Source of the DNA: Macrostomum lignano
Taxonomy: Eukaryota
DNA length: 64,000 bases
Assembly (NCBI GenBank): GCA_002269645.1
Contig: NIVC01000008.1
Location: 1-64,000, forward strand
Direction: 5' to 3'
Part shown: piece after piece, positions 45,701-51,700 of the stretch
Layout: every line of letters starts with the position of its first letter
Numbering within the stretch: the stretch's first letter is position 1
Translations under genes and position numbers: made by a program
The notes under the pieces: model-generated
What the model saw: the letters and a program-made list of their open reading frames with translations, nothing else
Databases searched by the model: none
What the model was told of the DNA's origin: nothing

Positions 45701-48700
45701 TGAGTGCGGCTTCTTCGCAGCAACAGCAGAAGAAACAATCCAAGCCAGAGCCCCACCAGGAGCCGCAAAACCACCAAGAGCGGCCACAAGAAACTCGAAG
45801 CTCGCCTAGATTTGAGCAAAGCATTCGCGACGAAATTTTGTCGCAGGTAATTACTGCGATTAATGAATGCTGCTTCAAGAGTACTATTAGTAGTAAAACT
45901 AAAACTAATTCAATATTCGTCCATCTATGGAAGGTCAACGAAGGTCAAGGCCTGAGCTGCGGCGGCCCGAGTCCGTTCTGCGGCAAGGCGACGGCGATGC
46001 GGCGTGGCGCCCCAGAGTCACTTGACGTGTCAAAACTGATGGGTGAGATGTCTAGATTTTCAAGCTTCTCTAAAGCTCTGTGTAATCCACTAGCATACTG
46101 GGGCATCAACAGAGGAGCGAGATCTGTACCGCCAGCAGCTGCACGAGGCCTCGGAGCGGATGCGATCCACTGCTGGCCTGATTCGCCACGGCCTGCTGGA
46201 GAAATTCAACGCGCTCGAGAGACAGGTGCGGCTGGAGAGGCGAGAGAACTGCCGGCTGGCTGAACAGGTGACTTTGTGGGCCTAATGGTGCTGGGGCTGC
46301 GGCTGCTGACATGTCTGTGGCTGTGGCTACGGCTGCTGACATGTCTGTGGCTGTGGCTGTGGCTGTGGCTGTGGCTATTACTGACATGTCTGTGGCTGTG
46401 GCTGTGGCTGTGGCTGCTGACATGTCTGTGGCTGGGGCTGCGGCTGCTGACATGTCTGTGGCTGGGGCTGTGGGTGTGGCTATTACTGACATGTCTGTGG
46501 CTGTGGCTGTGGCTGTGGCTGTGGCTGTGGCTGCTGACATGTCTGTGGCTGGGCTGCGGCTGCTGACATGTCTGTGGCTGGGGCTGTGGCTGTGGCTATT
46601 ACTGACATGTCTGTGGCTGTGGCTGTGGCTATTACTGACATGTCTGTGGCTGTGGGTGTGGCTATTACTGACATGTCTGTGGCTGTGGCTGTGGCTGTGG
46701 CTGCTGACATGTCTGTGGCTGGGGCTGCGGCTGCTGACATGTCTGTGGCTGGGGCTGTGGCTGTGGCTGTGGCTATTACTGACATGTCTGTGGCTGTGGC
46801 TGTGGCTATTACTGACATGTCTGTGGCTGTGGCTGTGGCTATTACTGACATGTCTGTGGCTGTGGCTGTGGCTATTACTGACATGTCTGTGGCTGTGGCT
46901 GTGGCTATTACTGACATGTCTGTGGCTGTGGCTGTGGCTGTGGCTATTACTGACATGTCTGTGGCTGTGGCTGTGGCTGTGGCTGTGGCTATTACTGACA
47001 TGTCTGTGGCTGTGGCTGTGGCTATTACTGACATGTCTGTGGCTGTGGCTGTGGCTATTACTGACATGTCTGTGGCTGTGGCTGTGGCTATTACTGACAT
47101 GTCTGTGGCTGTGGCTGTGGCTACTACTGAAATGGCTGTGGCTGTGGCTGTGGCTGCTGACATGTCTGTGGCTGTGGCTGTGGCTATTACTGACATGTCT
47201 GTGGCTGTGGCTGTGGCTACTACTGAAATGTCTGTGGCTGTGGCTGTGGCTGCTGACATGTCTGTGGCTGGGACTTCTGACATGTTTGTGCCTGGTTCTA
47301 ATGGCAACTACTTTAAAATAAGAACCACAAAACTTTCTTAGTTGCTTGAAAAAAATATTTATGCATATAATCATAAATTTCTGCCGCTTGAAGCAGCAAC
47401 TAGTTCAAATGTATTTCTTCATATAATTATACCGCAATACGTGTAAGACACAGTGGGGCAAGCAAACGCATGCACAAATCAAGCGCAGAAAGAAGAGGCA
47501 ATGGGAAAAGCATTCAATTTAGCAGGCAAAGCTATATGAAAGAAATGATTCTGCATATTAATTGCACTACGAGACGCAATACGGAAGTAAAAATCAGTCA
47601 AAAGCAGAGAAAACAGTTATGAAATTCAGTGCTGATCGGTGCACTTCAGAGCTCAAGTCATCCTAATTTGGGCAGCGACGGCAGCTCAGTCGACCTCCTC
47701 GACGGTGGGTCCGCCCGCTCGTCCCGCTCGCTGCGGACCCTGCGGAGGCGGCTGCTGCTGCTGCTGATGCAGCTTGGCCATGAGAGGCGAGCACAGGCTG
47801 CTCAGCTGCCGCTGCTGTTCGGCGATCTCGTCCTTGTCGGCCGTCTGGTTGTTCTCCAGCCAGGAGATGACGCGGTCGCAAGCGGCGGTCACCTCGCCGG
47901 CCTCCTTCTCGCCCAGCCGGTCCTTGCAGTCGTTGGCCGCCTGCTTGTACTGGAAGGCGAGCGATTCCAGCTGGTTGCGGGCCGCCAGGCGCTCGCGGTG
48001 CCGCTCGTCCTCCTCGCGGAACTTCTCCGCGTCCCGCACCATCCGCTCGATCTCGTCCTTCGACAGGCGACCCTTGTCGTTCGTGATCGTGATCTTCTCC
48101 TCCTTGCTGGTGCTCTTGTCCTTCGCCGACACCACCAGGATTCCGTTGGCGTCTACGTCGAAGGTCACCTCGATCTGCGGGACTCCGCGCGGCGCTGGCG
48201 GGATGCCGTCCAGGTTGAACCGGCCCAGCAGGTGGTTGTCCCTGGTCAGCGCCCGCTCGCCCTCAAACACCTGCACCGTGACGCCGCTCTGGTTGTCCGA
48301 GTACGTGGTGAACGTCTGCGTCGCCTTGGTTGGGATGCGGCTGTTCCTCTCCACGATCTTGGTCATCACGCCGCCGGCAGTCTCGATGCCCAGCGACAGC
48401 GGAGCCACGTCAAGCAGCAGCAGGTCTTCGATCTTCTCGTCCTTCACACCGGTCAGCACCGCCGCCTGCACCGCGGCTCCGTACGCGACCGCCTCATCCG
48501 GGTTGATCGACTTGTTCAGCGTCCGGCCGCCCATGAACTCCTGCAGCAGCTTCTGCACCTTCGGGATCCTCGTCGATCCGCCGACCAGAACAATCTCGCT
48601 GACGCTGCTCTTGTCCATCTTGGCGTCCCTCAGCGCTCGCTCCACCGGCTCCATCGTCTGACGGAAGAGGTCAGCGCACAGCTCCTCGAACCGAGCCCTG

Positions 48701-51700
48701 GTCACGCTGGTGTAAAAGTCGATGCCCTCGAACAGCGAGTCGATCTCGATGCTTGCCTGCGCTGAGCTGCTCAGAGTTCGCTTCGCTCGCTCAGCCGCTG
48801 TGCGCAGCCGCCTCACTGCTCGGGCGTTGCCGCTCATGTCCTTGCGGTACTTGCGCTTGAACTCCTGGATCAGGTGCTCCACCAGCCGGTTGTCAAAGTC
48901 TTCGCCGCCCAAATGAGTGTCACCGGCCGTCGATCGCACCTCGAACATGCTGCCCTCCGACACCGTCAGGATGGACACGTCGAATGTGCCGCCTCCCAGG
49001 TCGAAGATCAGAATGTTCTTCTCGCCGTCCAGGCTCTTGTCCAGCCCGTAGGCCAGGGCAGCCGCCGTCGGCTCGTTCACAATCCGCAGCACATTCAGCC
49101 CGGCGATCGCGCCAGCGTCCTTCGTCGCTTGCCGCTGGCTGTCGTTGAAGTAGGCCGGCACCGTGATCACCGCGTCAGTCACCTTCTCGCCGAGGTACGC
49201 CTCCGCCGTCTCCTTCATCTTGGTCAGCACCATGGCCGAGATCTCCTCCGGGTAGAAGCTCCGCCTCTCGCCCATGTACTGAACCTCGATCTTCGGCCGC
49301 CCACCGTCGTTCGCCACCTTGAACGGCCACAGCTTCATGTCCCGCTGCACCGTCTCGTCGCTGAACTTCCTCCCGATGAGTCGCTTGGCGTCGAACACCG
49401 TGTTCTCCGGGTTCATCGCCACCTGGTTCTTTGCCGCGTCGCCCACCAGCCTCTCCGTGTCCGTGAAGGCCACGTAGCTGGGCGTGGTTCGGTTGCCCTG
49501 GTCATTGGCGATGATCTCCACTTTGCCTGCCTGGAACACGCCCACGCACGAGTACGTGGTGCCCAGGTCGATGCCGATTGCAGGTCCGTTGCTCCTCTTG
49601 CCCATGATGCTTCTTCACTGAGCTGAGCTTGACTGAGAAAGAGGCTTCTTCACTGAGGAAGGCTTGTCTTGCTTTGGATGCTTTTGGATTGCTTTGGTTG
49701 CGATCCGAACTGCTTGCTCCTGGGCCAGCAGGACCGCCTGCTTTTATAGACTGCAGCTCAGCTTCGAGAAATTTCCAGAATTCCCCATTCACGCCGTCAC
49801 ACGTTGGCCCTCTGCTTCGCTGTGCTATTTTTAGAACACCGATTCTCGAATTTTCTCTACTAGTAGAACCCACTAACAATAATTAAAGTCACATTCGCTG
49901 CAGTTACTGAAAGTAGAAATATATAGTTATGTGTATATTTTTGTATTTCCCTTTGCAAAAATTGACTAGAAAGTGCCTTTACAATTACATTGCATGTACA
50001 TTGCAGCTCAAGCGTTGCCACAGCAGACAGACAAGCGCCTTCAGCGACAGCGCCTGTCAAGTCGGCGAGCCCTTCTTGCGGTCAGGTGAGTTGCAATTTG
50101 GGTTTTTGTCTGTCTGTCTGTCTGTCTGTCTGTCTGTCTGTCTGTCTGTCTGTCTGTCTGTCTGTCTGTCTGTCTGTCTGTCTTAGTGTCTGTCTGTCTG
50201 TCTGTCTGTCTGTCTGTCTGTCTGTCTGTCTGTCTGTCTGTCTGTCTGTCTGTCTGTCTGTCTGTCTGTCTGTCTGTCTGTCTGTCTGTCTGTCTGTCTG
50301 TCTGTCTGTCTGTCTGTCTGTCTGTCTGTCTGTCTGTCTGTCTGTCTGTCTGTCTGTCTGTCTGTCTGTCTGTCTGTCTGTCTGTCTGTCTGTCTGTCTG
50401 TGTGTCTGTCTGTCTGTCTGTCTGTCTGTGTGTCTGTCTGTCTGTCTGTCTGTCTGTCTGTCTGTCTGTCTGTCTGTCTGTCTGTCTGTCTGTCCTGTCT
50501 GTCTGTCTGTCTGTCTGTCTGTCTGTCTGTCTGTCTGTCTGTCTGTCTGTCTGTCTGTCTGTCTGTCTGTCTGTCTGTCTGTCTGTCTGTCTGTCTGTCT
50601 GTCTGTCTGTCTGTCTGTCTGTCTGTCTGTCTGTCTGTCTGCCGTAAAAGCCCCGGTGCCGGCAAAGTGTACAAAGGCTGGCCAAAGCCTGCATTGCCTT
50701 CAACTGCGGCCGCGCACAGGGCAGCAGACAGATTTGCCGAGCCTCCCTGCAGCAGCCGCGGCGCCGTATTCAGTATCCGTGGGCGCAGATAAATCCCCAA
50801 GTCCCTCCCCTCCGCTCCACTCCAGAGCCTGGCCGATTTGACGCCCGCTTCCCGCGCAGCGTCTTTCTGCATCAGCACCGGAGGCTGTCCACAGGGCGGG
50901 TAAGCGGTGGGGTTGGGGAGAAGTCGGGGCAAAGGCCGAAGCTACACAAGGCAAACACGGCTGCAGCTGGTTGGGCTAGAGATAAGAGCTTCCTGCGTCG
51001 CCATGGCAACTAAGTTTCTACCAGTTCGAATAAATCCTGGCTGCCTCGAATCCCAATTCAGATTGGCAAATTTAACCGGAGCGGAGCGGAGGCCACTCAG
51101 CTGAGAATCAGCAGCGCCTTTGGTGAGTTTTGAGCAGTTTATCATGAGAAATGTGCTAGTATCAGGAGCAGGAGCTGCTCTACATTTTCAAGTTCTCAGT
51201 TCAATCCAAGATTCCAGGGCATTTTGTTCGAAATTGAGGGGTAGGAAATGGCCCACTTCAGAGAATATAGACGTGCTTATGCCAAACAATTCAGGTATAA
51301 GTAAAAAAGTACCTTTCCACAAAAGCAGCCTTCCTTAGAAATAGCCTTTCTTAGAAATAGCCTTTCTTAGAAATAGCCTTCCTTAGAAATAGCCTTTCTT
51401 AGAAATAGCCTTTCTTAGAAATAGCCTTCCTTAGAAATAGCCTTTCTTAGAAATAGCCTTCCTTAGAAATAGCCTTTCTTAGAAACACCCTTCCTTAGAA
51501 ATACCCTAATGGTGTCAAAAAGGCAACAAAATATATCAACACAAAATTTCTGTGATTTCGTTGAGCCGGGTGTAATCAGTTTTAAAATTTGTTAAAATTC
51601 TCTTTTTTTTCAAAAACCGCAGAGGCTCTCGATCTGGCTGTGAAATCAGGATCGGTGTCCGCAAAAGCCCTAGCAACCCCAGTAGCCCAGACGAACGGCT

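Follow-up and report, generated by a model that had tools for sequence, protein, structure and literature searches.

The window analysed here comprises the first 64,000 nucleotides of contig NIVC01000008.1 of the flatworm Macrostomum lignano (NCBI GenBank assembly GCA_002269645.1, forward strand) and contains an intact gene for a cytosolic heat shock protein of the HSPA1 type, referred to as hsp70. This gene probably lies, in antisense orientation and in its entirety, inside a 3.7-kb intron of the long isoform of a larger gene on the opposite strand. By its predicted product this larger gene, called the host, is a very divergent, tail-anchored member of the IRAG/MRVI1 family, for which the label IRAG-like is justified. 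Exon 6 of the host, which precedes hsp70, and the exons beyond hsp70 most likely belong to one gene. The nesting is proposed because a paralogue fuses the homologue of exon 6 to the MRVI1 part, because the host exons form a long common reading frame and because the upstream exons have a GC distribution of the coding type. The locus is thus a fresh example of a well-known nested-gene layout.

The hsp70 unit is made up of the following elements.

47271-47685, minus strand: 3′ flank and probable 3′ untranslated region of hsp70, with no canonical poly(A) signal
47686-49605, minus strand: hsp70 coding sequence, 639 amino acids plus stop, intronless, with a C-terminal EEVD
49606-49715, minus strand: predicted 5′ leader, its start placed some 30 bp past the TATA box
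49741-49748, minus strand: TATA box TATAAAAG, read directly
49763-49780, minus strand: proximal heat-shock element (HSE) TTCtgGAAatTTCtcGAA, four contiguous perfect nGAAn/nTTCn units
49843-49855, minus strand: distal HSE GAAaaTTCgaGAA, three perfect units

The 639-aa Hsp70 is encoded by one uninterrupted open reading frame (ORF). Its product matches the Pfam family HSP70 (PF00012) with 851 bits over residues 9-612, aligns end-to-end with the human HSPA1A and HSPA2 chains at about 1033 bits and ends in GPTVEEVD, which includes the EEVD motif typical of cytosolic Hsp70s. A 2301-nt Logan contig (L002) has a coding region collinear with the ORF, with small in-frame gaps only and a nucleotide identity of 86%. 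Two M. lignano Hsp70 models, P0009 and P0017, were the top protein matches, listed at 98% identity. The window protein is identical to both, except for a model artefact (VITPAAATKDAG being substituted in the models) and for the N-terminal extensions that the models carry. The third-ranked match had an identity of 84%, and an exact look-up of the protein among public assemblies returned no record. The gene is one member of an M. lignano family of nearly identical intronless HSPA1-type genes.

The proximal and distal HSEs are located 15 bp and 95 bp, respectively, upstream of the TATA box. Perfect three-unit HSEs occur four times in the window, three of them inside a 93-bp stretch upstream of hsp70; dinucleotide-preserving shuffles gave a chance expectation of 0.7 matches for the whole window. 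No upstream ATG is present in the predicted leader of about 110 nt. In M. lignano kept for 2 h at 37 °C, heat shock protein genes and HSE-bearing long terminal repeat (LTR) retrotransposons respond strongly (bioRxiv 10.1101/2024.12.18.629116). In the part of Table S2 of that study considered here, HSPA1-like Hsp70 transcript clusters reach log2 fold changes of 12.7 and 14.4 under this treatment; these clusters are species-level data and cannot be mapped to the window copy. Their Pfam scores in the same part of the table (about 844-848 for Hsp70, 61-63 for MreB and 21-23 for FGGY_C) are near those of the window protein (851, 61.4 and 23.3). As the promoter is canonical and the HSPA1-like clusters of the species are strongly heat-induced, it is a strong inference that this copy is induced by heat through binding of heat shock factor at the HSEs.

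A preliminary description of the window had taken hsp70 for a complete gene, antisense to the host, and had placed its HSEs about 150 bp from host exon 7. All of this was borne out. The full-length ORF, the HSP70 match of 851 bits, the EEVD end and the TATA box with HSEs speak for completeness. The minus-strand ORF, TATA box and HSEs face host exons on the plus strand, and the distal HSE (49855) is separated from exon 7 (50007) by 151 bp.

The same part of Table S2 also lists a heat-induced cluster containing Hsp70, MligTCv3c-562.9828, with a length of 6462 nt and a log2 fold change of 4.2 (bioRxiv 10.1101/2024.12.18.629116). Its hsp70 ORF sits within a far longer transcript and resembles read-through or host pre-mRNA over a nested copy; the cluster is not mappable to the present locus.

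For the host, the exon model is as follows.

43066-43571 (open frame), 43978-44188 and 45637-45846, plus strand: upstream coiled-coil exons, spliced in frame to exon 6
46094-46267, plus strand: host exon 6, a coiled-coil segment ending in phase 0, defined by splice sites, frame and homology with the paralogue
46268-50006, plus strand: putative host intron, GT...AG, 3739 nt, based on the splice model, with the whole hsp70 unit inside
50007-50085, plus strand: predicted host exon 7, 79 nt, phase 0 to 1, with strong splice sites and an open frame
51025-51122, plus strand: alternative exon 7b, from the public M. lignano models P0142, P0123 and P0141
51623-51849, plus strand: host exon 8, defined by splice sites, frame and public models
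52219-52449, 53013-53498, 53597-53694, 53773-53863, 54592-54710 and 56004-56331, plus strand: host exons 10 to last, from the mapping of P0121 and the junctions

Exon 6 ends at 46267 with CAG/GTGACT in phase 0. Exon 7 is bordered by ttgcag/CTC at 50007 and by CAG/GTGAGT at 50085, and exon 8 opens at 51623 with ccgcag/AG, requiring one base from the preceding exon. When the 12 exons between 43066 and 56331 are spliced at consensus sites, they yield 919 codons with zero stops. Exon 6, ending in phase 0, is also in frame with exons 10 or 11, so that the conclusion on nesting is independent of exon 7. In the upstream exons the GC content of the first, second and third codon positions follows the order GC1 > GC2 < GC3, which is the coding-type pattern for this genome. 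The product of exons 10 to last comprises the MRVI1-type region and a C-terminal membrane anchor. One of the introns in this part, at 53695-53772, appears to be of the GC-AG type, with a length of 78 nt and the borders GAG/GCCAGT...ATATAG/G. It restores a host segment parallel to ELELLRQAVEDDQFYTDAD of the paralogue; the exon tied to it is skipped in the public model P0121.

Homologues of the host were found by exhaustive HMMER search (phmmer), and the Pfam family MRVI1 (PF05781) was scored against its gathering cut-off of 27 bits. The window-derived host protein reached 27.4 bits, P0121 28.2, the paralogue 45 and more distant relatives 140-210. P0121 (A0A1I8JFG4, M. lignano, 413 aa) corresponds to exons 10 to last of the locus, with 92% identity by HMMER and 91-100% when mapped onto the individual window exons. 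The M. lignano paralogue P0122, with P0140 (NCBI PAA91350.1) from the same cluster, is 44% identical. Relatives from nemerteans and molluscs, including a Mytilus cluster named 'inositol 1,4,5-triphosphate receptor associated 1-like', gave E-values of 1.5e-11 to 1e-4, and the identity with mollusc IRAG1-like proteins is 25-28%. The host and these relatives share the motifs FPSLPNS.L..LGL, GAVQQE.RL, KFQ and EEE..Q.G.E.G. A tail-anchor segment of 23 residues lies eight residues from the host C-terminus, in alignment with hydrophobic tails in the relatives. Of a putative function of the IRAG type, as a substrate of cyclic GMP (cGMP) kinase that binds the inositol trisphosphate (IP3) receptor, the sequence shows only basic sites of the RRxS type, RRRMS in exon 14 and KRRVSF in the doubtful exon 9.

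Detection of the MRVI1 domain depended on the exon model: it was obtained only with the model corrected by P0121 and the paralogue, and Pfam searches with single exons or with an initial, less accurate concatenation of exons found no MRVI1 domain. Two word-index homology searches with the concatenated host exons were empty as well. They are uninformative, the same collection holding proteins of 92-100% identity, and their failure is probably due to low-complexity words.

The joining of exon 6 to the MRVI1 part is indicated by the paralogue. P0140, taken from the NCBI annotation of GCA_002269645.1, and P0122, a separately deposited sequence found in UniRef only, both begin with ...EERDRYRRELQELSKRLDASAGIVRDGLLKKFEALEG..., which is homologous to exon 6, and both run from this segment into the MRVI1 region. 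Exon 6 and the N-terminal exon of P0140 match with E-values of 1.4e-8 in tblastn, 3e-13 in BLASTP and 6e-15 in the reciprocal search. P0140 is collinear, on the same strand, with positions 46112-46237 and then 53100-56325 of the window. The paralogous IRAG-like locus itself contains no hsp70, and the equivalent intron measures about 470 bp.

Several observations weigh against an hsp70 nested in a single IRAG-like gene. In none of the public protein models for the locus is exon 6 connected with the exons beyond hsp70; P0121 (from exon 10) and P0123, P0141 and P0142 (exon 7b with exon 8) are fragments, and P0017 is an antisense chimera. P0124, a homologue on a 2351-nt Logan contig from a different sample, has no exon-6-like N-terminus, and isoforms without one therefore exist. 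Exon 7 lacks homology support, as its comparison with the paralogue was not significant in a shuffle test (p = 0.33); when the start of exon 8 was included the signal was weak (p = 0.01 by shuffles) and the alignment unconvincing. No homologue of exons 3-5 was detected. Neither exons 3-5, 7, 8 and 10 against the paralogous locus nor the upstream coiled-coil region against a long nemertean IRAG-like protein gave a significant match. A start codon or 5′ end of the host was looked for and not found. Furthermore, the MRVI1 score of the host protein is borderline with respect to the cut-off, and no AATAAA or ATTAAA occurs within 400 nt 3′ of the hsp70 stop codon, the closest poly(A)-signal variants being AATACA at +271 and CATAAA at +323.

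Alternatively, two separate plus-strand genes may be present, a coiled-coil gene ending at exon 6 and an IRAG-like gene starting near exon 7b or exon 8. We consider this unlikely, but it deserves to be taken seriously. To the same doubtful degree, hsp70 would then be intergenic, in a head-to-head arrangement with the IRAG-like gene and a tail-to-tail one with the coiled-coil gene. Every public model for the locus starts at exon 7b or later, and exon 7b has a good acceptor before it and is out of frame with both exon 6 and exon 7; P0124 and the lack of homology for exon 7 fit two genes as well. However, P0140 and P0122 are independent annotations, and both put the exon-6 homologue N-terminal to the MRVI1 region in the same protein. 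Exon 6 moreover ends in a consensus donor in phase 0 and is in frame with exons 7, 10 or 11. No plus-strand AATAAA was found past exon 6, which is uninformative since the 3′ end of the host is also without one.

P0017 was tried as transcript evidence for the locus and rejected: its junctions do not fall at host splice sites, which marks it as an ab initio chimera. The antisense strand of a gene rich in GC at third codon positions reads open. Four pieces of the P0017 extension, from 52.4-54.7 kb, show 96-100% identity to minus-strand open frames of the window (50648-54653). A fifth piece, from 50.6-50.9 kb, has 87% identity, in an alignment that overruns the junction with hsp70. The database entry (A0A1I8IUW7, 'Heat shock 70 kDa protein', 860 aa) thus consists of open frames antisense to IRAG-like exons fused to Hsp70. 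P0009 (A0A1I8H2H4, 797 aa) and P0152 (UPI0007A2D90C, 1646 aa) are likewise fusion models.

Within the single IRAG-like gene preferred here, the public models point to a second, shorter form. P0142, P0123 and P0141 contain a 32-residue segment whose coding sequence, joined to exon 8 by splicing, corresponds to 51026-51121 at 100% identity. This exon 7b is bordered by ...tttctaccAG/ before 51025 and /GTGAGT after 51122. Its frame does not agree with that of exon 6 or of exon 7, and a reading continued from either meets stop codons. The exon has no ATG itself, and the first ATG of an mRNA starting in exon 7b is at 51724, in exon 8 and in the main frame; the predicted protein of 492 aa retains the MRVI1 region and the anchor. 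Exon 7b is therefore best described as the probable 5′ exon of a shorter host isoform. As inferred from these models, this isoform would start at or near 51025, in divergent orientation to the hsp70 promoter and HSEs and about 1.2 kb upstream of them.

The earlier claims on the host were supported in part. A transcript across 46267-50007 and the use of exon 7 are predictions. The in-frame joining of exons 6, 7 and 8 was confirmed by direct reading of their borders and phases. The IRAG-like identity agrees with the MRVI1 match, the IRAG1-like relatives, the common motifs and the C-terminal anchor. For the isoform starting downstream of hsp70, the models joining exon 7b to exon 8 fit, on an annotation-level basis.

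The arrangement invites the idea of a selected interference switch, in which heat-induced hsp70 polymerases would meet those of the long isoform head-on or would disturb the 3′ splice site. We regard such a switch as improbable, and the same holds for its outcome, a shift toward the short isoform starting downstream. Geometrically it is feasible, given a convergent orientation, a strong promoter, HSEs 151 bp from the exon 7 acceptor and a candidate short isoform starting downstream. Intronic transcription units such as nested genes and L1 elements can reduce or alter host transcripts, and nested genes in other systems have been described as interfering in this way (PMC3192792). On the other hand, the paralogue is without such an arrangement, the dispersed near-identical hsp70 copies suggest a recent and possibly neutral placement, and nested genes on the antisense strand are widespread without having this role; in Drosophila, intronic genes make up about 6% of the total (PMC3786989). 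The part of Table S2 considered here, with the down-regulated sheet outside it, has no MRVI1 or IRAG entry. It is very doubtful that heat-shock activation of hsp70 acts as a conditional off-switch for the long isoform with the coiled coil, whose product would be an IRAG-like regulator of calcium release from the endoplasmic reticulum. Equally doubtful is the means proposed for it, in which polymerases collide head-on or the 3′ splice site close by is disrupted while the divergent short isoform continues. The interference switch is, in short, speculation. If true, it would couple proteotoxic stress to calcium signalling by gene architecture alone.

The sequence surrounding hsp70 bears on how the nested arrangement may have come about. 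Two tandem arrays lie near the gene, one on either side.

46315-47270, no strand: minisatellite with a 33-bp period, occupying the intron between exon 6 and the 3′ end of hsp70
50107-50641, no strand: (TGTC)n microsatellite, just past exon 7

Near-identical hsp70 copies with different flanks are known from P0009 and P0152. Terminal, direct or inverted repeats bracketing hsp70, which would be a sign of transposon capture, were not found, only tandem arrays, and Rfam and tRNA scans of the whole window gave no matches. A dispersing hsp70 copy may have landed, or have been retained, in the host intron, as for many nested genes. The nesting may then be incidental, a by-product of gene dispersal, and any dampening of the long isoform under heat shock would be a side effect of the placement. 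An incidental origin is favoured because the paralogous locus is without hsp70 and near-identical copies have different flanks, and it is the most economical account. That the adjacency is an assembly artefact, or hsp70 a dead retrocopy, is hardly credible: the genome is highly repetitive and minisatellites are present on both flanks, but P0017 records the same adjacency of hsp70 and 50.6-54.7 kb (independently only if it stems from another assembly), the ORF is intact, the gene brings a promoter of its own, whose HSEs and TATA box would be missing from a retrocopy, and neither a poly(A) tract nor direct or inverted repeats on the flanks were found.

The main present value of the locus lies in the correction of its annotation, the public models being fragmentary and one of them an antisense chimera fused to Hsp70. 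A very divergent flatworm gene of the IRAG/MRVI1 family, with long and short forms as predicted here, is documented as well. If the long isoform spans an hsp70 that passes from silent to extremely active, the locus would offer a clean natural test of conditional transcriptional interference in an animal capable of transgenesis.

Some details of the host gene differ between the window and the public models. Within 51835-51960, exon 8 ends in the window with ...CAGTTCCCGAAG/gt, and the public models imply one or two additional bases, reading ...NQFSRRL... in P0142 and P0123 and ...NQFSE in P0141. Either differing alleles or homeologues or an indel error account for this discrepancy. A small exon 9 at 51917-51959, with a basic RRxS or RVxF-like site, is in frame given two additional bases. 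In the window copy its inclusion leads to a TGA at the exon 10 junction, and its skipping preserves the frame.

Repeats also occur within and around the host exons. At 52477-52940 a 39-bp repeat (13 codons) is present in about 12 copies with 95% matches and is open in the frame of exon 11. The ORF 52194-53537 continues through this repeat, which is spliced out in the public model and could be coding in some isoform. The last host intron contains a 19-bp minisatellite (54791-55989, about 63 copies, 94% matches) that is stop-free in all three plus-strand frames and gives rise to three overlapping ORFs, each longer than 440 aa. The first definable host exon is closely preceded, at 42880-42980, by a tRNA-like T-arm (GGTTCGATTCCGTGCGAAGCC), for which ARAGORN made no tRNA call in this interval; the element is possibly a tRNA-derived short interspersed element.

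The sole other perfect three-unit HSE of the window is at 62874-62886. It lies about 450 bp from a minus-strand ORF (63332-63559) that looks like a gypsy-type reverse transcriptase (...RICADYCMVNHV...YPIP...), for which Pfam gave a non-significant result on this short fragment. HSE and ORF (62874-63559) may represent one of the HSE-bearing LTR retrotransposons of M. lignano. Four further genes were noted in the window. An apparently intronless ORF on the plus strand (5019-6416) encodes a double-C2 synaptotagmin-like protein. On the minus strand follow a protein disulfide isomerase (19403-23122) and the catalytic subunit of a PP2A-type phosphatase (31629-33624). A gene with a fibrinogen C-terminal domain is located on the plus strand at about 61860-62249, its upstream part being a long minisatellite in coding frame.

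Compared with known systems, hsp70 resembles the Drosophila Hsp70 and human HSPA1A/B type in its full-length, intronless coding sequence with EEVD, in its short leader and in its arrays of three or four inverted nGAAn units, which lie no more than about 110 bp before the TATA box. It differs from this type in having no canonical poly(A) signal and in being one among several near-identical dispersed copies. With the family of IRAG1/MRVI1 and IRAG2/LRMP (PF05781) the host shares the central MRVI1 region, the conserved motifs and the C-terminal membrane anchor. Unlike these proteins it is very divergent, as its score of 27.4 bits illustrates, and it would possess an extra N-terminal coiled-coil exon that is common only to the Macrostomum paralogue. 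The consequence proposed for the M. lignano host is akin to the interference described for nested genes and for L1 elements in introns (PMC3192792), whereas here an inducible, all-or-none hsp70 would make the effect conditional. The layout as a whole is closest in kind to 2mit in an intron of Drosophila timeless2 (PMC3786989). While the host transcript across the M. lignano intron is deduced from the paralogue and from frame logic, the two loci are alike in that a complete gene with its own promoter is set between opposite-strand exons of a larger gene.

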